A stretch of 64,000 nucleotides of DNA, taken from positions 124,001-188,000 of IMG/VR virus record IMGVR_UViG_3300045974_000132. One strand, written 5' to 3'. Below the pieces are notes generated by a model. That model did no database searches and was not told the DNA's origin. It worked only from the letters and a program-made list of their open reading frames with translations. Shown here one piece after another: positions 917 to 50,733 of the stretch. The position numbers were made by a program, and so were the translations under genes. Within the stretch, counting starts at the first letter, position 1. Every line of letters begins with the position of its first letter.

Positions 917-2329
917 TTACTTTTGCCCTGCTTCGTAATCTACTTCAACTTCATCATCGTTTAGGTTTAGATCATGCTCACCTTTACTGCGTGAAGAAGT
1001 ACGCTTGCTACCATTGCTTACGTTAACTTCGCCACCTTCTTTTGATGAACCGTCTACTGCTTCTTCTCCGTCCATGTTCTCGACAGACATAACTTCAAAC
1101 AGCTCCTTCAATTCAAACGGGAACAGTTCTTGGTCACGCGCCTTCAACTGGCGAATCGGAAGTACCTTGCTCTCACGCTGTTCGGGCTTGTAGTAGTTCC
1201 AAGTCCAGGCTGCGTCAGCATGTTCAAGCATACCCTTAGAGTACCGAATGCGATCATCATCACTGTCAAGCTGGGCAAGAAGAATAACAAGACAATTATT
1301 CTCACCACTAAACAACTTGCATTGTCGCACGACAGCAGATAGTGCCTTCCACTGATCCTTTTCATCTATACCGTCCAGTAGTGAAATGTAGTCAATGCCT
1401 ATTACTTTGTAACCATAAGGCTTGACCAGCGTTAGCAACTGCGTAATGTTGACACCGCGCTTCGGGCAGATGAAAGAGTATTGAGCATCATACTTCTCAC
1501 CATACCGATGTAACTTACGCCAAGCGCGTTTAGCTTCTGCCCGTTCTTCGTCTGACAAGGCTTTCTTAACGAATTTCCAATACGGAATCTTCGTCAAGCT
1601 GGACAATAAGCGGCGTGTAATCTTACGCTCATTCATTTCAAGCGAAACATTCGCTACGCTGATCTTGTTGATCCTATACATATTGGTCAACATGTTCATC
1701 AATAGCGTGGACTTACCACCAGAAGTAGTTGCTGCTAACAGCATTACACCCTCTGAAGGAACACCACCATTCTTTTCATCAATGTCTTTGAAGCCGCACT
1801 TGAGTAGGGCTTCATCTTCCATACTTAAAGCATCATCAACTAGGTCTATAGCATTCGCGTCACGACCGATTGAATGCACAAGATTACCTAGTTCATGCCT
1901 AGATCGAGTTGTCGTAAGGACGTTTGTAACCTCGTCTAGTAAGTCATCTACTTCTACCTCCGGCTTTTTAAGTTCATCAATGATGTCCTTGGCCATGTAA
2001 TATAAGGCACGAGTCTTTCGATACTTATCGAGAGCTTCTATTAGACGATGCGCTCTATCAACTGTTCTACAAGCAGGCACTTCGGACTCACGTAGAAGAT
2101 CCCGATACTCTTCATTCAGAGCAGGATCTTCTAGGAGTTCAGTATAGCCCAAAATAACAGACCGCTTCTTAGCAACATTGTGTAGTCGCTGATAAGCTGC
2201 CTTGCAAGGTTCATATTGAAAGAAGGTATCGTCTAGCCCACCCAACAGCAAAGCCTGCACTTCCTCGCGCGAGGAAGCACAGATACTTTTGATTGCTGTC
2301 TGTTCCAGTTTTTGGCTAAACAGTTTAAT
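917..2329 (-). CDS. dnaB: DnaB-like (SF4) replicative DNA helicase
   Basis: Walker A AATTSGGKST, SLEM motif, Walker B IGIDYISL, LAQL and KARD motifs. Frame is open to a probable ATT start at 2329 with GGAG 7 nt upstream (ORF track starts at GTG 2260). Confidence 0.9.
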   Translation of the reverse strand: MKLFSQKLEQTAIKSICASSREEVQALLLGGLDDTFFQYEPCKAAYQRLHNVAKKRSVILGYTELLEDPALNEEYRDLLRESEVPACRTVDRAHRLIEALDKYRKTRALYYMAKDIIDELKKPEVEVDDLLDEVTNVLTTTRSRHELGNLVHSIGRDANAIDLVDDALSMEDEALLKCGFKDIDEKNGGVPSEGVMLLAATTSGGKSTLLMNMLTNMYRINKISVANVSLEMNERKITRRLLSSLTKIPYWKFVKKALSDEERAEAKRAWRKLHRYGEKYDAQYSFICPKRGVNITQLLTLVKPYGYKVIGIDYISLLDGIDEKDQWKALSAVVRQCKLFSGENNCLVILLAQLDSDDDRIRYSKGMLEHADAAWTWNYYKPEQRESKVLPIRQLKARDQELFPFELKELFEVMSVENMDGEEAVDGSSKEGGEVNVSNGSKRTSSRSKGEHDLNLNDDEVEVDYEAGQK

Positions 2330-2343
2330 TTTGGTACTCCCAC

Positions 2344-2748
2344 TTATTTCTTATGCTGATAAATAGGAGGGATGAAGATTTGCAATTCAGGCATCTTCTC
2401 TTCTGTACGTCGCAACCACTCAATGAACTCATTGGGCGGAGGCTCTGTAACAGATACCTGCATGTCTCCGATCGGGCGGCCAGGAGCCTTCCAACGTTTA
2501 ACACATGCGAACATAGACCTTGAAATCAATCCCGCGATAGCTGCATCGAGTGCTGCTTCGGAGAGCATATACTCCCCACACAATAGAGCTTTTACAGAAT
2601 TGACAGTAAGACGTTCGTTCGCCTTGATCGTGTTGTAAACCATATACACAACAATCGAATGCTTAACCGTAGAATCCTCTGACGCAAGACCACAACTGAA
2701 GCGGTGCTTCAATTCGATCTTATCTAAAACAATTGTGTCAGTGGTCAT
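2344..2748 (-). CDS. hypothetical protein
   Basis: 134 aa ORF translationally coupled to the upstream gene. Confidence 0.65.
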   Translation of the reverse strand: MTTDTIVLDKIELKHRFSCGLASEDSTVKHSIVVYMVYNTIKANERLTVNSVKALLCGEYMLSEAALDAAIAGLISRSMFACVKRWKAPGRPIGDMQVSVTEPPPNEFIEWLRRTEEKMPELQIFIPPIYQHKK

Positions 2749-3848
2749 TATGCCTCCATTAACTCACGCAAGCTTCCGAGGAAGGTTTCTACCTTGCCCG
2801 GTGTCACCTTTAGAAACTCTGCTACATACCCATTGAACTCATTTGCAGAGCAACGTGCTTGTACGTCCACGTTGTCTTCACTAGGCTTACACAGTTCTTC
2901 CTGCTTCAGCCAATCGGTGAACTCTGCGTCTTCTTTACCCATGAGCAAGGATATGAAGCGATACTTTTTCTTACGATGCTTAACTGAGTTCAACACCTCA
3001 GAGACACTGAACTCCAACTCAAACTTAGTGTGCGCATCATTGGCAACGTTTAGGATGTCGACAGGGTTGCCGTCTTCATCTACGCCCGTATGAACTTGAT
3101 TCTGTGAAACACACAACAAGCTGAATTGGTTCTCATTGTTTTTATCACTACCTACATTTACCAATCGACCACGCTTTTGTGAAGTGTGACTCTTGATAAT
3201 ATTGATGGCATGATTATGTACAGCCCTCTTAAGGTAGTTGATGATGTGAAGCTCAGTTGCTTGAGCGGGAATCAACGAGTAGAAGGATTGAAGCACCTTC
3301 GTACTAAGGTCACTGTGCATATCCTCAAAAGTAATATTGTCGGATTTAACAATGAACCGAAGCTTCTTGTAACTGATAAACTTGATGTACTTCAGAATCG
3401 AAGGATAGATACGTGTGAATAATGTGTCAATCTCCTTTGGGTCTAATAGAACATTGTTCCTACCTACTTTCCTACCTGCTTGACACAGGGCGCGACGGAA
3501 CCAACCGTTTTCACTGAACAAGGTGTACACCATGAACGTGTCGTTTCGTGTGATCCCAAGAAGCGCGCCTAAGGAGAATGCGTCTTCCTTAGTAGGGCTT
3601 TTCATTCTTGCTAGGCGTAGAGAAAACAGCTTCAGGTCGAGATTCGCATAGCGTTGATCTTGAATCGACAACCTGAATAGCTTTGCACTGTACTCACTAC
3701 AATAAGGCTTGATGTACTCCTGATATTCAAACGCAGAAGAACTACCTACGAGATACAGGATACTCTCTGCATACGTATAAACAAATGCCTCACTGTCTGG
3801 TTCAACGTACAAGCCAGCTTTTACTACCCCATATAAACCTTTTGCCAT
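2748..3848 (-). CDS. putative sigma-factor-like transcription protein
   Basis: Segment FEDMHSDLSTKVLQSF...INYLKRAVHNHAINIIKSHTSQKR resembles sigma70-family region 2; by-eye similarity only. Confidence 0.4.
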   Translation of the reverse strand: MAKGLYGVVKAGLYVEPDSEAFVYTYAESILYLVGSSSAFEYQEYIKPYCSEYSAKLFRLSIQDQRYANLDLKLFSLRLARMKSPTKEDAFSLGALLGITRNDTFMVYTLFSENGWFRRALCQAGRKVGRNNVLLDPKEIDTLFTRIYPSILKYIKFISYKKLRFIVKSDNITFEDMHSDLSTKVLQSFYSLIPAQATELHIINYLKRAVHNHAINIIKSHTSQKRGRLVNVGSDKNNENQFSLLCVSQNQVHTGVDEDGNPVDILNVANDAHTKFELEFSVSEVLNSVKHRKKKYRFISLLMGKEDAEFTDWLKQEELCKPSEDNVDVQARCSANEFNGYVAEFLKVTPGKVETFLGSLRELMEA

Positions 3849-6216: not shown

Positions 6217-7638
6217 CTAAAATGCCTTTATATCAAGAGTTTTCAGATCCCGTACTACCCGAACTGGGAGTATCTTCAACTCTTGTTGCAGCTTTTTGAT
6301 GCTAAGTTCGGCCTCCTTAATTGCCGATTTAAGTTTAGATGCCTCAAGTGACTTTAGTTGCCTTACTTTCAGATCGAGGATTTCATTTGCTTCTTCTGGA
6401 GTTATCTTCAACTTCGTTACCAGATAAGCAGTAGAGTCTTCTACCTTCAAAGATGCAATAATCACAGCAAGATTGAGGACCGCAAGCAGAGTTACGTTCA
6501 ACCTACGTAACTTCTTTTCCTCCAATGAGATTAGATAATGAACTACCTTACGTTCCATTTCGATGCGCCAGCTGCACCATTCATGAATCAAGGTAGCTAC
6601 GTCAGAACGTCGGAACGATACGCCTTTAAGTTGTCGATCCGTAACTCCTATATCATAGGATTGTGTTCGTGTTATTTCCTTCTCAACTACTGGAAGTACA
6701 TCTTCCAGCTTTAGGTTTCTCATATAGGTTATTTCAAATCTAAAGCCCTTCTTGTCTGAAACATCTGACACCGATTGGATCATCGGTTTAGCCAAAAGGT
6801 TCTTACTGAGAGTTGCCCAACTAGCCTTTGAAATCAACCCGGGTGCTGCGGATGTTAATGCGATGATGCGCTTTGCTTCATCTACTTCCAGAATCGGTCG
6901 AAATGATATACTGCCCTTGCCGGTTTTAAAGAATGCAAGTTTTGTTTTCCGATCCGATATACACTCGCCGCCGTATGCAAAGTTAAAGTCCAAGTTATCT
7001 AAGCACAGCTTTGGTGTAATCTTGATGCCTTCTAAACACATTACAACTAGGTCCAGAACACCCTTGATACCGAACGATGGGCATTCTGCGCTCATACCGA
7101 AAGCGATTGACACGCTGCCGTTCAACAACAAAACGGGAAGCTTGACAGGTAGCACTAACGGCATTCGATCATCACCGCTGAAGTTAGGCACATAGTCTGT
7201 CACCGCCAGATACGTCGGATCGAGCATGTACTTCGTTGCAAACGTTGACAACCTTGCTTCAGTATAACGGTAAGCAGCAGGAGGGTCGATGTTATCTCCC
7301 CAATTGCCGAAACCTTCTACTAAGGGAATAGGCGTGTTGCGTGTTGCCCAATCCCCTTTCTCATTCTTCGTACCTGCGATACCAACCATCGCGTCATACG
7401 TTGAAGAGTCACCGTGTGGGTGGAACTTACCTAATACCTCACCTACAGTACGAGCAGCTTTCTTGAAAGGCCCTGAGTCTTTCAACCCTAGTCCATACAA
7501 CGCCCATAGAACACAGCGATGGACAGGCTTAAGGCCGTCACGAAAATCAGGAACTGCTCGTTGCATAACAACCTCTTGTCCATAAGACAAAAGATTACGT
7601 GCTGTTATGGAAGATAAAGATTCAGTTTGGTGTGTCAC
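6217..7638 (-). CDS. gyrA: type IIA topoisomerase subunit A (GyrA/ParC-like, lacking C-terminal beta-pinwheel)
   Basis: RAVPDFRDGLKPVHR, GKFHPHGDSS, catalytic AAYRYTEARL; only 473 aa. Confidence 0.93.
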   Translation of the reverse strand: MTHQTESLSSITARNLLSYGQEVVMQRAVPDFRDGLKPVHRCVLWALYGLGLKDSGPFKKAARTVGEVLGKFHPHGDSSTYDAMVGIAGTKNEKGDWATRNTPIPLVEGFGNWGDNIDPPAAYRYTEARLSTFATKYMLDPTYLAVTDYVPNFSGDDRMPLVLPVKLPVLLLNGSVSIAFGMSAECPSFGIKGVLDLVVMCLEGIKITPKLCLDNLDFNFAYGGECISDRKTKLAFFKTGKGSISFRPILEVDEAKRIIALTSAAPGLISKASWATLSKNLLAKPMIQSVSDVSDKKGFRFEITYMRNLKLEDVLPVVEKEITRTQSYDIGVTDRQLKGVSFRRSDVATLIHEWCSWRIEMERKVVHYLISLEEKKLRRLNVTLLAVLNLAVIIASLKVEDSTAYLVTKLKITPEEANEILDLKVRQLKSLEASKLKSAIKEAELSIKKLQQELKILPVRVVRDLKTLDIKAF

Positions 7639-7665
7639 GGTATTTTTCTTATTTCAAGAAACGAC

Positions 7666-7698
7666 AAAAGGCCGAGGCTCAATTACGAGTCTCAGCCG
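7666..7698 (-). terminator. rho-independent terminator candidate
   Basis: GGCTGAGAC/GCCTCGGCC-type stem followed by TTTT on the minus strand, after the 7710 gene. Confidence 0.45.
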
Positions 7699-7709
7699 AC
7701 GAATTTTAC

Positions 7710-8138
7710 TTATCCGGCGCGCTGTGTAACGGCCGCCGTTATATCTGATACCTTTGGAGCAGCTTCTACTTGTGCTTTGGTAGCACAGTCTTCTGCACTT
7801 GTAGGGACTGCCAACAGGACGGGCGCTTCAACGTCCCCTATAAGCTTGATGCAAAGATCAATTTCTGCCAGACGAACCAACTTCGATTTGCCGAAGACGA
7901 TCTTCTCACCCAATGCAGCACCTAGCTCGCCCCGCGCTAGGTTGTAGTCTTGAACGCATAGAGCCGTTGTCTTCCCAACTTTCAGGAAGGTATCCTTTTG
8001 GAATACGAAGGGCGTTCCCACATGCACATACTCGAATCGCACCGACGTTGCCGACAGCTTGCCGTTCAGGAGGAGCAACTTAGGTTCAGGAACTACAACC
8101 TTACGTGCTTTGGAGGATTCCTTTTTGTTCTTTGCCAT
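7710..8138 (-). CDS. hypothetical protein
   Basis: ORF with AGGATG SD, downstream of a consensus sigma70 promoter. Confidence 0.65.
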   Translation of the reverse strand: MAKNKKESSKARKVVVPEPKLLLLNGKLSATSVRFEYVHVGTPFVFQKDTFLKVGKTTALCVQDYNLARGELGAALGEKIVFGKSKLVRLAEIDLCIKLIGDVEAPVLLAVPTSAEDCATKAQVEAAPKVSDITAAVTQRAG

Positions 8139-8317: not shown

Positions 8318-8788
8318 TTAAAGACTTTTAGAAACTAGCTTTTCGTCATGCGCTATAAGGAGCAAGTCTTTGATGATCGAGCCCACGCTTTCCTTATCGG
8401 TACTGAGAACATGGCATATGAAATCCTTGCCGTATTCCTTAATCCGGGAAGCTGCCAATTCATGTGCCTTCCGATTGCTTAGTTCAACCCGTTTCTTCAA
8501 ATGGGAATACCTGGGATCACGATGGATGGACTTTATGCTAGTGGGTAGAATCTTACTCGCATCCTCATACATTTCCAAAAGGGTTTTCTGAGCATTAGCT
8601 TCGCCCCGGACTTCCTTCATACGCTTTGCATAGTCAATAAAGGCCGGTAGTACATGCTTCAGTTCATCCTCGGCGGTCTTGCTGTCCGTAAGATAGACAC
8701 GGACGAAAGACATGAATACCTGAAACAAAATAGAGGTTGCTTCTGAGGGATGTTCTTTGTCAGACGACGTAGAGATTATGATCTCCAT
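8318..8788 (-). CDS. hypothetical protein
   Basis: 156 aa ORF with AAGGAAG SD between gyrB-C and gyrA. Confidence 0.65.
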   Translation of the reverse strand: MEIIISTSSDKEHPSEATSILFQVFMSFVRVYLTDSKTAEDELKHVLPAFIDYAKRMKEVRGEANAQKTLLEMYEDASKILPTSIKSIHRDPRYSHLKKRVELSNRKAHELAASRIKEYGKDFICHVLSTDKESVGSIIKDLLLIAHDEKLVSKSL

Positions 8789-8797
8789 GATACTTCC

Positions 8798-9523
8798 TTA
8801 TAGGCCAAGTAGCTCCTTACGAGCAATAGTTTCACTACCTACAAGCCGTTCAAAGTATTGTAGTTCTTTTCCTTTTGGCGGTGTTACTTTGATGACTGTC
8901 CGTGTAGCAGGATTGAATGCTACGTGTTCCAACATCTGAGGACTGATTTCACCCCAGCCCTTAGCTCGACCAATTATGTTTGAATTGGCTCCCTTGGGTA
9001 GCTGCTTCTTTACTTCCAAGAAGGTATCCCCGAAGTAGCGTTTGTTCTTGAAGAAGGCTGAATACAGAGGCGCGTCGACAACGTAGATCATGCCCTGTTC
9101 AAACAGTCTGGGCATCAGACGCCAATACAGAGTTAGCAGCAATACGCAAATGTGACGACCGTCTTCGTCAGCATCAGGAAGCAAGAATATCTTACCTACT
9201 CGAAGCTTGCTGTACGCATCTCCTTTGGCTTCCTTACCCACATCAGCTTTGTGAATATCAAAGTTGTAGCCGGTTGCCATTAAGATGTTCTGGACCTTAT
9301 CTGATTCCAGAATCTTGTGGAGCTTCTGCTTTGCAACGTTCATAATCTTACCGTCGAGCTTCATCAACTCTTGGTATTTACTGTCACGCGCATTCTTCCC
9401 AGTGTTGTGGACATACACCCCGTTTCCTAAAGCAAAGTTATGGTACTCAGGTACAGTAGCATCATATACCGGTACAGACTTTTCTAACTTTATTCGACGA
9501 ATAGACTTAACAAAAACACCCAT
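8798..9523 (-). CDS. gyrB: GyrB/ParE C-terminal half fused to split-intein C fragment (IntC, 40 aa, 9404-9523)
   Basis: Intein blocks F/G VYDATVPEYHNF...VHN followed by +1 Thr, then TOPRIM GKIMN, PDADEDGRHI and KGWGE; own SD GAAGGTG. Confidence 0.93.
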   Translation of the reverse strand: MGVFVKSIRRIKLEKSVPVYDATVPEYHNFALGNGVYVHNTGKNARDSKYQELMKLDGKIMNVAKQKLHKILESDKVQNILMATGYNFDIHKADVGKEAKGDAYSKLRVGKIFLLPDADEDGRHICVLLLTLYWRLMPRLFEQGMIYVVDAPLYSAFFKNKRYFGDTFLEVKKQLPKGANSNIIGRAKGWGEISPQMLEHVAFNPATRTVIKVTPPKGKELQYFERLVGSETIARKELLGL

Positions 9524-9575
9524 TAAATCACCTTCTACTAAATACTAATTTAATTGTGTTATAAAGGAGAACATA

Positions 9576-10631
9576 ATGAAATTAGCGGATTTTAAACAAA
9601 ACCTAACTTTAATCAACCGAGAGCAAGTAGCTAATTTTCGTGAGCTATTTCCTTCTAAGTTTACAGAATTACTAAACAAACAAAATGAAGGAAGGGCCAG
9701 GAAAGAGGGTAGATTAAAAGCTCAGATTTTACATGATTTCTTATTCAAAAAACCAAAATGTTCTTGTGGAAAACAAACAAACTGGATGCCTGAAGGCAAA
9801 TATGCAAAGTTTTGTTCGCGTGAATGTGCAGATGGTTCACAAGAAACCGTAGATAAAAGAAGGGCTACTTCTAAGGAAAGATTTGGTGGTGAACCAAATC
9901 TGCATCCTACTATACAAAAGAAAAAGAAGAAGGTATTCCTTGAGAAATACGGTGTAGACAATCCTTCAAAATCAGAAAAGATCAAACGCAAAAAGCGTAA
10001 AACGTCCTTAAGTAATTTTGGAGTAACGCATTGGACTAAAACAGAAGAAGGTCGGCAGTTTATGTCTGAAGAAAATCCGATGTATCTTGCAGCTTCGCTT
10101 GAAACCTTAAAGAAGACGAATCTAAGTAAATACGGTTGCGAGTTTGCTTCTCAGCATAGATCCGTAAAAGCTAAAATGAGAAGGACTAGCTTAAAGCGAT
10201 ACGGTGTTCCTAACGCAGGCGTACTACCGAAATTTCATAGAAAAATATGCTCCGATAGATTTGGTACAACGCATACAGTTCAGGGCTATGAACCCAGAGC
10301 CATTGAATGGCTGTCTAATAGGAAAACCGTTGTAAGCATAAGTTCTTCCAGAAATAGCATACCGGTAATATACTATAAAAGCAATCGTAGCTACTATACT
10401 GACCTAGTCGTTAGTATGAAGTCTGGGTTAAAAAGAATAATAGAAGTAAAGGGCTCCTATCCTCTTAGGTGCTGCTTTGAAACAAACGTTCAGAAATTTA
10501 AAGCTGCTTCAAAGTATGCTAAATCTATAGAGCAGGAGTTTTGGCTGTTCTACTATACAGACAGAGGGCGACTTATAAAGGTTCGGTCGCCCTCAAGAAA
10601 AGACTTAACAAGGCTGCTATCGAGTCTGTAA
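9576..10631 (+). CDS. free-standing putative homing endonuclease (KYG repeats + C-terminal PD-(D/E)xK domain)
   Basis: CxC...CSxxC zinc motif, repeated KYGVxNP-type motifs, C-terminal QGYE...YYTD...IIEVKG; AT-rich; only plus-strand gene; AAGGAG SD and upstream CTAATTTA. Confidence 0.8.
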   Translation: MKLADFKQNLTLINREQVANFRELFPSKFTELLNKQNEGRARKEGRLKAQILHDFLFKKPKCSCGKQTNWMPEGKYAKFCSRECADGSQETVDKRRATSKERFGGEPNLHPTIQKKKKKVFLEKYGVDNPSKSEKIKRKKRKTSLSNFGVTHWTKTEEGRQFMSEENPMYLAASLETLKKTNLSKYGCEFASQHRSVKAKMRRTSLKRYGVPNAGVLPKFHRKICSDRFGTTHTVQGYEPRAIEWLSNRKTVVSISSSRNSIPVIYYKSNRSYYTDLVVSMKSGLKRIIEVKGSYPLRCCFETNVQKFKAASKYAKSIEQEFWLFYYTDRGRLIKVRSPSRKDLTRLLSSL

Positions 10632-12245
10632 CTCTATGCCTTCTTTAAGGTCCTGTGCTTCTGTATAAATACCATCTATCTGCAACCAAGGATGGTCTAT
10701 AGTACATATCCAAGTAGTCCCGTCAGACAGTTCTACTTCAATCAATTCGTCAACCCATTTAGTGAGTCGAGGTTCATCAAAAATGACCTCGACTTCTTTT
10801 TTGGTCTTTAAATTGAAAGCGAAGCCTTTAAACTGTTCTCCAGCTTCCGTACGCTTTGCCATTTCTTCAAAAAGTATAGTAGAGCCGTCAGAAAGAAGAA
10901 CTGGTGTATTTCCAATGAAACAGCCCGCAGCAGAGTCACCTTCAACTAGATACAGCTCACGGGCAGCCACAGGGCATTTCGGAGCAGCAACTAGAGAAGA
11001 AGGAAGCGAAGATTTAGCACGTCCCTTAGCATCAGCAATTGCTGACAACGTTTTCTTGAAAGCTTCCTTTGATACCTTAACAGCCATCGCACGTTTGACA
11101 ATAGCCCGTGCAAGAGGTTTGTTCTTGTCGAAGAATAGTTTCAACTGAGGAAGTAGCAAAGCTTCAACCTGCTTTGACACATTGGAAGTCAGTCGATCCT
11201 TTGTCTGACCGCTGTACTCAGCATGGTGCATCTTCCAGTCAAGAATACCTACAAGTCCCGAGTACGCATCTTTCGGAGCAAACTTCTGGGTCTTCTTCTT
11301 GAAAGGAGCAAGTGCAGCATTCAAAGAATTGCGGAAGCCAAGTTCATGCTCACCGTCATCCCGAGTACGTCCAGAACAGACATAGGTTTCAAGCGCATCA
11401 TCGTCAGAGTAGGTCGACCATTGCAGAGCAACAGACATATCATCATGGATGAAAGAGAACATACGACCTGTTGCAGTTACATCCCGTTCGGCCAACCGTT
11501 GCTTGATAATAGATTCAAGACCGCCCTTATTCAAGAAGGTCTTAGACTTTCCATTAGCACTAAACGTTACTTCCAACCCCGGATTGAGATTAGCAAACGA
11601 CTTCATCCAAGCAGCCGTATAACCAAGATCGAGAGTTGCTTTCGTCTTACCCTTGTCAGTCGATACGATTGTTTGATCTGTTGACCAAAGAACGATTGTC
11701 CCCGATACAGGCTTGTAAGGCATGATCTTAGTAACGCGCACAGGAGGCTTCTCTTTGAGCAACTCTGTTACAGGTTTGCCCTTAGAGAACTTCTGATAGT
11801 GCCAAGCTTTGTCCCGAAACGTCCATACTTCAAAAGAAGAGGATACAGCATTAACACCTGCTGCTCCTACTCCGTGAACACCGCGCGACTTCTTGTAAGC
11901 ACTGTCATTGAACTTACCACCTGTGTGCAGTTCAGTAAAGATCAATGTCAGGGTTGATGCTTTCTTGCTTCTAGGATTCTCGGGATCAACGACCTTTAGG
12001 CCAACAGGGATACCTTGAGCTTTGTCTGCTACAAGATAAACGTTGGCCTTATTGTCAGCATAGACGAAGATGGACTTATTACGACCAGCCATAAATTCGT
12101 CAGCAGAGTTGTCGAAGATTTCCTTGACGCATTGAAATACCATTGAACGACCGCGCTCACCTAGGTACATCCCAGGGTTTTCACGCACATTATCTGGAAA
12201 CTTTAATCTAACAATATTTGCTTCACTGTATGAAGACCTTGCCAT
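10617..12245 (-). CDS. gyrB: GyrB/ParE N-terminal half (GHKL ATPase, transducer) fused to split-intein N fragment (IntN, 101 aa, 10617-10922)
   Basis: VRENPGMYLG, EIFDNSADE, GIP, LHTGGKF, GVHGVG; TOPRIM VEGDSAAG followed by intein block A CFIGNTPV and block B TIDHPW, then a stop. Confidence 0.93.
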   Translation of the reverse strand: MARSSYSEANIVRLKFPDNVRENPGMYLGERGRSMVFQCVKEIFDNSADEFMAGRNKSIFVYADNKANVYLVADKAQGIPVGLKVVDPENPRSKKASTLTLIFTELHTGGKFNDSAYKKSRGVHGVGAAGVNAVSSSFEVWTFRDKAWHYQKFSKGKPVTELLKEKPPVRVTKIMPYKPVSGTIVLWSTDQTIVSTDKGKTKATLDLGYTAAWMKSFANLNPGLEVTFSANGKSKTFLNKGGLESIIKQRLAERDVTATGRMFSFIHDDMSVALQWSTYSDDDALETYVCSGRTRDDGEHELGFRNSLNAALAPFKKKTQKFAPKDAYSGLVGILDWKMHHAEYSGQTKDRLTSNVSKQVEALLLPQLKLFFDKNKPLARAIVKRAMAVKVSKEAFKKTLSAIADAKGRAKSSLPSSLVAAPKCPVAARELYLVEGDSAAGCFIGNTPVLLSDGSTILFEEMAKRTEAGEQFKGFAFNLKTKKEVEVIFDEPRLTKWVDELIEVELSDGTTWICTIDHPWLQIDGIYTEAQDLKEGIELQTR

Positions 12246-13092
12246 GTTTTTTCTCGAAGTGTTTTATTTTCAAAAGGAGTTCTTCTAAAGACAGATGACT
12301 TGTACTATTTTTCTTCATATTAGTTGTACAAGGCATTAGTTTTAGATTCGCGGGATGGCATATAATGTGCAAGGGTACTATGGGTGACCGCTTCACATAT
12401 CTATTCTTTGCTTGTGAATAAATATTCCAACCGTCAAACAAACTTAACTGATGGTCAACATGGTGATCATAAGACCTTAAACTTTTAGTGTCAATAAGGT
12501 CGCCCCACACGACTAAGACGCTCTCAGTAACTTTTCGTACCGCATATTTGTAAGAAGACTGTGTAGTAAAAGTCTTCCTAAAAGCATTGCGTAAACTTTC
12601 TTGATTTCTTTTTACACAATTAGCAGTGCCTAATTCCAAGGAACGCTGAAATGCTAAGTTGACACGCTCTGAGGTAGACCTTAAAGCAATGCCCTCTTCT
12701 TGCAATACATTCTTAACATGTAGAGGGTCCCGTAAAGCCACGCATTCTGTAATTTCCTGAATACTAGCACTATCCTTAACGTACATTCTTATTATTTTTT
12801 GCCTATTTTTCTGTACAATTTGTTTATGATGCTTTATGAGGTCGGCTTTACCTTTAGATACGCCTTCTTCATTAACAATAGCTTGTACAGTAGACATAGA
12901 CAAACCTACTTCCTCTGATATATCTCGGAAGGTCTGATTTTTGTATAAACGTACTACTTTCTTTTTTAAGCGATCTGGGATTATTAAAGCCCACTTACCG
13001 TTTTTGGATTTAGTGTAACTATATCCATTTTTCCATTTAACCGTATCCCCTACGTTTCCGGGATAGGTTCTAGGTATAACATTTTGTAGCAT
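12223..13092 (-). CDS. putative homing endonuclease (HTH + HNH-like)
   Basis: HTH (TFRDISEEVGLSMSTVQAIV) and C-terminal HVDHQ...HPANLKLM...NMKK; AT-rich; overlaps the gyrB start. Confidence 0.7.
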   Translation of the reverse strand: MLQNVIPRTYPGNVGDTVKWKNGYSYTKSKNGKWALIIPDRLKKKVVRLYKNQTFRDISEEVGLSMSTVQAIVNEEGVSKGKADLIKHHKQIVQKNRQKIIRMYVKDSASIQEITECVALRDPLHVKNVLQEEGIALRSTSERVNLAFQRSLELGTANCVKRNQESLRNAFRKTFTTQSSYKYAVRKVTESVLVVWGDLIDTKSLRSYDHHVDHQLSLFDGWNIYSQAKNRYVKRSPIVPLHIICHPANLKLMPCTTNMKKNSTSHLSLEELLLKIKHFEKKHGKVFIQ

Positions 13093-13099
13093 AGTAGAC

Positions 13100-13139
13100 T
13101 CCTAGATACATACACATCTAAATTAGTATGTATCTAGGA
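13100..13139 (-). promoter_or_regulatory. SD-sequestering hairpin containing the CTAATTTA promoter motif
   Basis: 14 bp inverted repeat TCCTAGATACATAC/GTATGTATCTAGGA covering AGGA of the AGGAG SD of the HNH gene; motif at 13119-13126. Confidence 0.75.
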
Positions 13140-33205: not shown

Positions 33206-33590
33206 GCCGCTCACCTATTTTGGTAATAAGGACTCCGTCATTATCAGGAGAGTGAGCGGCTTAACAAACCAAAGTCTGTTAGTGACCCCATCCGTTTAGG
33301 TGCTGTTAGGCAGCCTTCCGGAAAGACGCATCATTCGCGGCAATTACAAGTTTAGCCCGGTTTAACGAGAGTACAATGCTCGGATCGTTCTTTATCAACT
33401 ACTCATGCCCAATCGAAACCAGGTCAGGCCCATCAGGATCGTTCTATGTATCACCCACCCCGGTGACCTCAGCCTTGCGGTAGGACCTTTCGGCACACAG
33501 AACGATTTTGGTGGACCTGGGGAGAATCGAACTCCCGTCTTGAACACTTTTATTTCAAAAGTCTCATAAGCAAAGTTGTTCCGGTAGCTA
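33206..33590 (-). ncRNA. ssrA: circularly permuted (two-piece) tmRNA
   Basis: T-arm and CAGGTCC-ACCA (33509-33540) lie upstream of the 5' strand GGGCCTG (33431); G3-U70 pair; tag ORF (A)ANDASFRKAA* at 33306-33341; outer boundaries approximate. Confidence 0.9.
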
Positions 33591-33646
33591 ATCGGCTTTA
33601 CTTACATACGATCATATTCCTTAACACGCCAATGATTACGTGTTAG

Positions 33647-50629: not shown

Positions 50630-50733
50630 AGTCAAGGAAGCTCTAACTCTTTTCATCTAAATCAGATGTAACGAATTAGTATTTACAAGTTGAAAGAAAC
50701 TACCTTGTATTTCATTCCCTTTGTTTACAGTTT

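Follow-up and report, generated by a model that had tools for sequence, protein, structure and literature searches.

A fractured phage topoisomerase II gene with a candidate split intein and an opposite-strand endonuclease gene

Organization of the interrupted locus

We analysed a stretch of 64,000 nucleotides (nt; hereafter the window) from the 286-kb viral contig IMGVR_UViG_3300045974_000132, a metagenome assembly, in which the gene for the large subunit of a type II topoisomerase is broken into two minus-strand genes. The first, the N gene, ends in the putative N-terminal half of an intein (IntN); the second, the C gene, begins with the putative C-terminal half (IntC), and a plus-strand gene lies between them (Table 1). 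The domains of a type IIA topoisomerase B subunit (GHKL ATPase, transducer, TOPRIM and C-terminal domain) are divided over the two halves, and an A-like partner is also encoded. Matches of the N gene to GyrB and topoisomerase II large-subunit profiles span its residues 3-442. In the GyrB profile NF004189, the N gene covers positions 7-436 and the C gene 436-628, and in phrog_543 they cover 20-452 (1e-76) and 449-635, respectively, so that the two halves cover both host profiles without gap or overlap. The N-extein matches Pfam DNA_gyraseB (8e-19) and HATPase_c, and the C-extein matches Toprim and DNA_gyraseB_C. The Toprim match in the C gene begins only at profile position 15, which places the break inside TOPRIM. 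Among known phages, the closest topoisomerase proteins are those of the jumbo phages NCTB, Dickeya JA29, Lu11 and PaBG (38-42% identity). A preliminary description of this DNA had reported a fractured gyrB broken inside TOPRIM. It located the break and both halves correctly, but the gene is, by its sequence affinities, a jumbo-phage topoisomerase II large subunit (a GyrB/ParE homologue) and not a bacterial gyrB.

Table 1. Features of the topoisomerase locus and its surroundings, in window coordinates (a slash marks the boundary between intein and extein; aa, amino acids).
Feature	Position	Strand	Remarks
N gene	10617..12245	-	542 aa; ends ...YLVEGDSAAG/CFIGNTPVLL...ELQTR, stop
N-extein	10923..12245	-	residues 1-441; GHKL ATPase, transducer, first TOPRIM motif; ends ...VEGDSAAG
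IntN	10617..10922	-	101 aa; Cys1 ... TIDH ... ELQTR, then TAG stop at 10619-10617
C gene	8798..9523	-	241 aa; begins MGVFVKSIRRIKLEKSVPVYDATVPEYHNFALGNGVYVHN/TGKNARD
IntC	9404..9523	-	40 aa, MGVFVKSIRRIKLEKSVPVYDATVPEYHNFALGNGVYVHN; block F (D, H), block G (HN)
C-extein	8798..9403	-	201 aa plus stop; Thr+1, GKNARD..., rest of TOPRIM (DxD), GyrB C-terminal domain
Putative endonuclease gene, free-standing	9576..10631	+	351 aa; last 15 nt overlap the IntN end tail to tail
Cys4 Zn-ribbon (after N-terminal helices)	about 9759-9827	+	putative endonuclease gene; C62, C64, C80, C84
YGVxNP repeats of DUF7487	about 9834-10220	+	putative endonuclease gene
PD-(D/E)xK nuclease domain	about 10239-10595	+	putative endonuclease gene; E239, D276, E290, K292
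Divergent spacer	9524..9575		52 nt, AT-rich; two back-to-back ribosome-binding sites, read from the sequence
Motif AAATTAGTATTTA	9539-9551	-	
Motif AAATTAGTATTTA	13120-13132	+	
Motif AAATTAGTATTTA	50673-50685	+	
GyrA-like partner (topoisomerase II medium subunit)	6217..7638	-	473 aa, uninterrupted; Pfam DNA_topoisoIV 9e-71; phrog_551 2e-84
Open reading frame with helix-turn-helix matches	12223-13092	-	289 aa; overlaps the N-gene start by 23 nt
Permuted (two-piece) transfer-messenger RNA	33215-33601	-	phage-encoded; Rfam RF04321, 89 bits
Seven transfer RNA genes	29593-50123	-	Leu x2, Thr x2, Ser, Met and the one in the next row
Transfer RNA with odd anticodon	34456-34530	-	called by ARAGORN with a four-base 'tgca' anticodon

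The residues expected of a splicing-competent intein lie at the two edges of the break. The Cys1 codon (10922-10920) directly follows EGDSAAG, block B reads T74-I-D-H77, and the block F Asp and His and the block G His-Asn precede the Thr+1 codon (9403-9401) in the C gene (VYDATVPEYHNF...VHN/T). NCBIfam intein_Nterm (TIGR01445) matches residues 442-519 of the N gene with 26.9 bits (cut-off 24.5), intein_Cterm (TIGR01443) matches residues 18-41 of the C gene with 32.9 bits (cut-off 15.6), and IntC also matches positions 120-155 of Pfam Intein_splicing. IntN is acidic (isoelectric point 4.4, net charge -10). The two intein halves are encoded by separate open reading frames with their own stop and start, 1093 nt apart, and the C gene has its own ATG with the Shine-Dalgarno sequence GAAGGTGA 4 nt ahead. 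The acidic 101-aa IntN with Cys1 and TxxH, the Thr nucleophile at +1 and the C gene with its own Shine-Dalgarno sequence thus stand as first described. The same is true of the intein motifs HNF and VHN of the 40-aa IntC, but its description as basic needs tempering, with an isoelectric point of 9.3 and a net charge of only +2.

Uninterrupted relatives provide a reference for the joined protein. The nearest by extein (P0148-P0155) are 74-78% identical and 644-666 aa long, mostly 644-651 aa; the window exteins sum to 642 aa (441 + 201). In two of them, P0152 and P0153, the junction reads EGDSAAG/TGKNARDSKYQE, letter for letter that of the joined window exteins. Residues 5-444 of P0152 align to the N-extein (75.7% identity) and 445-645 to the C-extein, and the locus that encodes it (L017) is syntenic with the window. 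The isolated phages JA29 (EGDSAGG/TGKNARD) and NCTB (EGDSAGG/TAKDARN) also have Thr at the site, making Thr+1 a native residue of the clade. Removal of the in-frame insertion is predicted to restore the host protein exactly. Nucleotide similarity between the window and the intein-less L017 is highest in the 40 extein codons directly 3' of the insertion site (9283-9403), where it reaches 0.93 and 0.85 (mean over the gene, 0.71), synonymous positions included, in this one comparison; the tract could be an endonuclease recognition region or a recombination tract.

The antisense endonuclease that the preliminary description placed between the halves is borne out as a plus-strand open reading frame with a PD-(D/E)xK nuclease domain. 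Its protein matches Pfam DUF7487 (1.5e-26) and Tn7_TnsA-like_N (PF08722, 2.5e-6), and two PHROGs families annotated 'homing endonuclease', including phrog_3339 (2e-18). Invariant in an alignment of 20 homologues are the four Zn-ribbon cysteines, the repeated YGVxNP modules, and E239, D276, E290 and K292, the classical PD-(D/E)xK set. In the AlphaFold2 model (predicted local distance difference test score, pLDDT, 87.8), the repeat region is all-helical and the C-terminal domain is of the alpha/beta type. Foldseek's best matches to this model in the PDB are all PD-(D/E)xK nucleases: Cas4 SSO0001, TnsA (probability 1.00 over 130 columns), Hjc and RecU. Searching the PDB by sequence with the same protein gave no meaningful match. 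Elsewhere, DUF7487 is joined to Vsr-like DUF559, MTES_1575, T5orf172 or HNH domains, in keeping with a DNA-binding module that is portable among homing endonucleases. Phage homologues, with 23-34% identity, carry the annotation endonuclease, HJR-family nuclease or homing endonuclease; our literature search found no paper that mentions 'DUF7487'. The GC content of the gene is 0.38, compared with 0.46 for the exteins.

The spacer from which the nuclease gene and the C gene diverge carries the ribosome-binding sites of both, AAGGAG on the plus strand for the nuclease and GAAGGTGA on the minus strand for the C gene. A scan for sigma-70 promoters and terminators found no more sites than in shuffled sequence. 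Just upstream of the C-gene Shine-Dalgarno sequence is the motif AAATTAGTATTTA, which has three matches in the window against 0.42 expected. Comparable AT-rich motifs occupy the same place in three related loci (L003, L009 and L011) and in one that lacks the endonuclease (L004), and the motif may be a promoter for the C half.

Related alleles and probable mobility of the element

Searches with the intein stretch of the N gene (residues 425-542: the last 17 extein residues and IntN) recovered another 15 N-halves, 539-577 aa long and terminating 101-111 residues past Cys1, and searches with the extein added seven more. Together with the window this gives 23 split alleles, all from metagenomic phages. 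Pairwise IntN identity among the 23 is 28-84% (median 47%), and Cys1, Thr74 and His77 are kept in every one. All nine C-halves that were read (window, L003, L004, L006, L008, L009, L011, L015 and L016) keep VYD..., H-N-(F/Y/L) and VHN/T. Between phages, the intein halves (44-78%) are more conserved than the exteins (35-62%), and the endonuclease is the least conserved part (29-52%). The preservation of catalytic residues across this range of IntN identity, also in alleles without an endonuclease, supports selection for splicing. As judged from these comparisons, the split alleles are no one-off but form a new, widespread and apparently mobile family of at least 23 members.

A full-length DUF7487/PD-(D/E)xK gene lies on the opposite strand between the halves in eight distinct loci: the window, L003 (on a contig of 199 kb), L006 (47 kb), L008, L009, L011, L020 (268 kb) and L022 (287 kb). 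L007 and L019 are counted with L006, since the DNA of L007 is identical over the aligned cassette region and L019 is a contig from the same IMG sample. Apparent differences between L006 and L007 in endonuclease and IntC length were discarded, as the DNA is identical and the gene calls alone differ. The endonuclease 3' end overlaps the IntN end by 12-36 nt in the window, L003, L006, L008 and L009; in L011, 130 nt separate the two. Both ribosome-binding sites lie in a short divergent spacer (12-58 nt), and the window layout recurs in L003, L009 and L011. In L015, a 115-aa opposite-strand remnant remains in situ with the Zn-ribbon and repeats deleted (hidden Markov model E = 5e-20). Three loci have no endonuclease, their halves being 51 (L004), 7 (L016) and about 180 nt (L024) apart. 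The intein halves are intact in L015 and in these three.

Contiguous inteins occupy this site as well. Among them, two of phage type, P0018 (153 aa) and P0020 (149 aa), are mini-inteins followed by Thr+1. Cellular-type GyrB proteins have inteins of 144-482 aa at exactly this site, followed by SAKQGRD with Ser+1. Over query residues 425-542, P0018 is 52% identical to the window, and P0022-P0026, all with Cys1 and HN, are 36-43% identical. Net charge in the split alleles is -4 to -16 for IntN and 0 to +3 for IntC, whereas the equivalent parts of the contiguous alleles carry -5 to +3 and -5 to +1, without segregation. The split intein of the topoisomerase is an allele of the known GyrB intein site.

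The P0018 model (pLDDT 93.9, predicted template modelling score 0.87) was used to locate the break in the HINT fold. The structure that it matches best is that of the NrdJ-1 split intein, 8ubs (template modelling score, TM, 0.83/0.85; 22% identity), followed by RadA, CDC21, RecA, DnaB and DnaE inteins; over the intein matches as a whole, TM is up to 0.83-0.87. The window IntN aligns to model residues 1-106 and IntC residues 4-40 to 117-153, and this places the break in the loop 107-116 between two strands. On this model, the break is in the canonical endonuclease-insertion and split loop of the HINT fold. Natural split inteins with the break at the usual position have fragments of about 100 and 40 aa (PMC11923092), and the 101 and 40 aa in the window are the sizes expected of a canonical split. 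In PDB sequence searches the halves are distant from all solved inteins, with the Pab PolC intein as the best match (E = 5e-4) and NrdJ-1 at E = 0.59; IntC matches the Pho CDC21 and RadA inteins.

The distribution of the intein was mapped on an unrooted extein tree of 72 proteins (23 split, one contiguous and 48 without an intein). At least 16 changes in presence are required, 14 of them forced by well-supported branches, whereas shuffled labels average 20.4. The window falls in a supported clade of eight in which the other seven have no intein. P0003 and P0192 have near-identical exteins and strongly diverged IntN sequences. In the extein tree and the intein tree alike, the contiguous P0018 falls inside a group of split alleles, and the split or contiguous state therefore changed at least once in the phage clade. 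As the extein tree is unrooted, gains and losses are indistinguishable. The patchy distribution on the tree, together with the series of endonuclease decay, is the pattern of a homing element, and indicates that the element is mobile and has probably been gained and lost repeatedly. Megablast of the region against GenBank phages gave no match, and the phage thus has no close cultured relative there. With IntN alone, tblastn found only matches of 26-36% to inteins of other genes, so no isolated phage in GenBank carries the element.

Other interrupted genes came to light in these searches. In L012 (1419-5068) and L021 (1100-7176), the reading frame of IntN stays open through an HNH-like region (P0017, 771 aa). 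IntC and the C-extein follow in the next open reading frame, with an overlap of 4 nt in L012 and of about 49 nt in L021; this may be either a large intein with a frameshift or another way of being split. L021, L022 and L025 (about 1500-3100 in each) have a second, contiguous intein farther upstream in the topoisomerase II large-subunit gene. The GyrA-like partner is a target as well: in L006 (10821 to the end) and L007 it is a 945-aa protein with a contiguous intein, and L035 (3767-6461) holds a fractured GyrA-like gene with a same-strand DUF7487 endonuclease. Four other fractured IMG/VR genes (L026, L028, L030 and L031) carry split inteins 37-41% identical to the topoisomerase family. Same-strand HNH_3 endonucleases lie between the halves in L026, L028 and L031; in L030 the host is an AAA ATPase, and the middle open reading frame (341 aa) has no Pfam hit.

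Proposed mechanism and alternative explanations

So how might a topoisomerase encoded in two pieces become functional? We consider it highly probable that the locus is a fractured topoisomerase gene with a naturally split intein that requires trans-splicing, and with an opposite-strand homing endonuclease. The two halves would be translated separately, after which the acidic IntN and mildly basic IntC would associate and fold as one class-1 HINT domain. Trans-splicing would proceed via Cys1, the block-B Thr and His, the block-F Asp and His, the terminal His-Asn and Thr+1. Its product would be a 642-aa subunit with the native junction ...EGDSAAG-TGKNARD... within the TOPRIM metal site, able to work with the adjacent GyrA-like subunit. 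The opposite-strand gene would encode a free-standing homing endonuclease composed of a Zn-ribbon, DUF7487 DNA-binding repeats and a PD-(D/E)xK nuclease. During co-infection, this enzyme would cut alleles that lack the intein, at the insertion site or close to it, and repair would then copy the full cassette, from the end of IntN through the endonuclease gene to the start of IntC.

Several points weigh against this interpretation. Splicing, cleavage and homing, as well as the endonuclease target and any regulatory effect of the antisense arrangement, are inferred from sequence alone, and the phage is uncultured and known from a metagenome. The T4 enzyme gp39/gp60, split nearby in TOPRIM, works when assembled non-covalently (bioRxiv 10.1101/2022.08.31.505936), and covalent joining is thus not strictly proven necessary. 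Natural split inteins often splice poorly in vitro (PMC11923092). Activity of the window nuclease is uncertain, because it has YYTD where most members have YYPD, with T for P before the catalytic Asp. The sampling of the extein tree followed two biased routes, in that split alleles were found via the intein and the others via similarity to the window.

The main rival holds that the halves are never spliced, and that the intein pieces or the exteins hold the polypeptides together in a non-covalent complex that is active as such. There are precedents, as a phage topoisomerase II large subunit (Topo2L) split in TOPRIM by a MobA element works as two proteins with gp52 (bioRxiv 10.1101/2022.08.31.505936), and the split NrdA of phage Aeh1 assembles via element-derived tails. 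However, simple dimerization tags would need no splicing residues, yet C1, T..H, D, H, HN and Thr+1 are kept in all alleles, down to 28% identity and also where the endonuclease is gone. Moreover, a 141-aa HINT domain between the TOPRIM Glu motif and DxD would occupy the metal site, and the contiguous alleles at the same site must splice to work. We therefore regard unspliced assembly as distinctly improbable, and most likely the enzyme has to be joined by protein trans-splicing. The preliminary description named joining at the RNA level as an outcome that would overturn its proposal. Such joining might involve an intron, trans-splicing or translational bypass. Group I introns do occur in phage genes, and T4 gene 60 is bypassed (bioRxiv 10.1101/2022.08.31.505936), but no Rfam intron or other RNA family was found in 8700-12300, at the gathering threshold or with E up to 1, and the insertion codes for genuine intein halves that share the reading frames of the two exteins. 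We give this explanation almost no weight.

A different doubt concerns the opposite-strand gene, which might not be, or no longer be, the homing endonuclease of the site, but rather a domesticated or unrelated nuclease, or a means of antisense control of a read-through transcript. Its role is read from sequence and a structural model, and its orientation is unlike that in all fractured genes of Dassa et al. It is also the least conserved part of the element, with YYTD in the window, and relatives of its nuclease domain include head-completion (gp4-like) proteins (a weak match to phrog_218; PMC7824862). Against this, the gene is found only between intein halves in eight loci and is decayed or gone in others, a series that matches the expected life cycle of a homing endonuclease gene. 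The element is patchy among close relatives, DUF7487 is combined with homing-type nuclease domains, phage homologues are annotated as homing endonucleases, and the four nuclease residues are invariant. On balance, a role other than homing seems unlikely. That the topoisomerase is a decaying pseudogene, broken by an insertion in a phage that relies on host gyrase, is very unlikely. The gene is physically interrupted and we know it only as a sequence, but both halves are full-length, 76-78% identical to their intact relatives and free of frameshifts and stops; each has a start codon and Shine-Dalgarno sequence, the partner subunit is intact, and the split state is maintained in 23 diverged alleles. 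The chance is likewise minute that a contiguous intein with an in-frame endonuclease had its middle piece mis-oriented, by assembly error or as an invertible segment. The contig is a metagenome assembly, but the same orientation recurs in independent assemblies of different samples and pipelines (ENA, JGI and Logan), with the tail-to-tail overlap in five loci, and IntN has a stop codon and IntC its own start and Shine-Dalgarno sequence. A search for inverted and direct repeats found none flanking the endonuclease gene, and the invertible segment was dropped on these grounds.

A more far-reaching version of the split-intein interpretation is one that we put forward tentatively and consider doubtful. 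It holds that the topoisomerase locus preserves every life stage of a split intein, that the antisense layout is not incidental and that the element limits itself. The stages may be an empty site, a contiguous mini-intein, an intein with an in-frame HNH, a split intein with the opposite-strand endonuclease, a split intein with a remnant and a split intein alone, with P0018 among the split alleles perhaps representing re-fusion or a second independent fracture. Transcription of both halves would yield antisense RNA across the endonuclease gene, and the element would thereby be self-limiting; expression of the C half may be coupled to silencing of the nuclease.

Genomic surroundings and comparison with known systems

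The 289-aa open reading frame that overlaps the topoisomerase N-gene start has helix-turn-helix matches, an HNH-like motif (DHHVDH...N...N) and a weak match to a PHROG HNH endonuclease. As the intein-less but syntenic L017 has an unrelated 123-aa open reading frame in this slot, the gene may be a second free-standing homing endonuclease beside the topoisomerase gene. Farther along the window, the transfer-messenger RNA, for which ARAGORN gives the tag AANDASFRKAA, might hint at the host group. In L006, the gene directly after the topoisomerase C half (7176-7811) has a weak Pfam match to AbiEii, the toxin of an abortive-infection pair.

The contiguous GyrB inteins of bacteria and archaea (EGDSAGG/SAKQGRD) are homologous to the split intein and share its insertion point. 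Unlike it, they are made as single polypeptides and are either mini-inteins or hold an endonuclease domain in frame; charge is not segregated in them, and those of cellular GyrB have Ser+1. The preliminary description had pointed to a contiguous intein at the equivalent GyrB site of Synechocystis; the analysis bears the site out for bacterial-type GyrB proteins (SAKQGRD). The Ssp GyrB intein is the engineered example of these contiguous inteins.

The predicted fold and the split position are those of NrdJ-1 (8ubs) and Npu DnaE (4kl5), to which the P0018 model aligns with TM 0.83-0.85 and 0.79-0.85, respectively, and like NrdJ-1 and DnaE the topoisomerase intein has a negative IntN and a positive IntC. 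It differs from NrdJ-1, Npu DnaE and gp41-1 in sequence, with only 15-22% identity in alignments of the P0018 model. The +1 nucleophile is Thr, whereas it is Cys in DnaE and Ser in gp41-1, NrdJ-1 and IMPDH-1. Few natural split inteins are available, and they are valuable tools in protein ligation. Here, at least 23 diverged natural alleles with a Cys1/Thr+1 pair, identical to as little as 28%, are available. Given their low identity to the split inteins in use, the family is a plausible source of orthogonal split-intein pairs.

In T4 (gene 39, mobA and gene 60), too, a mobile endonuclease cassette divides this enzyme within TOPRIM, with close relatives that lack the insertion and with endonuclease decay. 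Unlike the element described here, that of T4 lacks an intein. The T4 halves assemble non-covalently and bear tails derived from the element, which combines a same-strand HNH endonuclease with a 50-nt bypass. The T4 site is also farther downstream, as the gp60-like phrog_7229 begins at residue 88 of the window C gene. As a prior description, the nearest is that of the metagenomic Topo2L 'MGS5', a phage open reading frame interrupted by Hint and HintC pieces with an endonuclease between them (bioRxiv 10.1101/2022.08.31.505936). There, the endonuclease is of VSR type, and the lineage is T4/Campylobacter-phage-like and also has the MobA-type split. The preprint gives it one sentence, as a metagenomic T4-like Topo2L open reading frame 'split by a homing intein', with neither site nor strand stated in its text. 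The preliminary description knew of no naturally split GyrB intein. In the openly searchable literature, which excludes subscription-only papers, we found no account of a natural split intein in GyrB or topoisomerase II, but this 2022 preprint mentions the Hint/VSR/HintC Topo2L in passing.

Close counterparts are the fractured genes of Dassa et al. 2009, which include gp41-1, gp41-8, NrdJ-1, IMPDH-1, NrdA-2, DnaE, ligase and terminase (PMC2677866). As in those, a phage DNA-metabolism gene is broken at one locus with its pieces in the original order. The intein halves of about 100 and 40 aa have complementary charge, charge segregation in natural split inteins having been described in the same study (PMC2677866). 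A free-standing endonuclease lies between the halves and overlaps one of them, and some loci have lost it. The differences are in the host, the nuclease and the layout. In all 26 loci of Dassa et al., the three coding regions are on the same strand, the endonucleases are GIY-YIG or Vsr-like and no host is a topoisomerase (PMC2677866). Here, by contrast, the host gene is a topoisomerase, and the endonuclease is on the opposite strand in all eight loci and in the L015 remnant. In theirs, the endonuclease 3' end overlaps the start of IntC; in ours, it meets the end of IntN tail to tail. The TnsA-like PD-(D/E)xK nuclease replaces their GIY-YIG or Vsr-like (EDxHD) enzymes. Should trans-splicing hold true, type II topoisomerase would join the enzymes that phages assemble by protein trans-splicing. 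The empty, contiguous, split and endonuclease-less alleles among close relatives form a system in which the origin and persistence of split inteins can be tested. The opposite-strand PD-(D/E)xK/DUF7487 layout lies outside the original definition of a fractured gene, and we conclude that the element probably works like the fractured genes of Dassa et al., with the host gene, the nuclease family and the opposite-strand layout as its new features.

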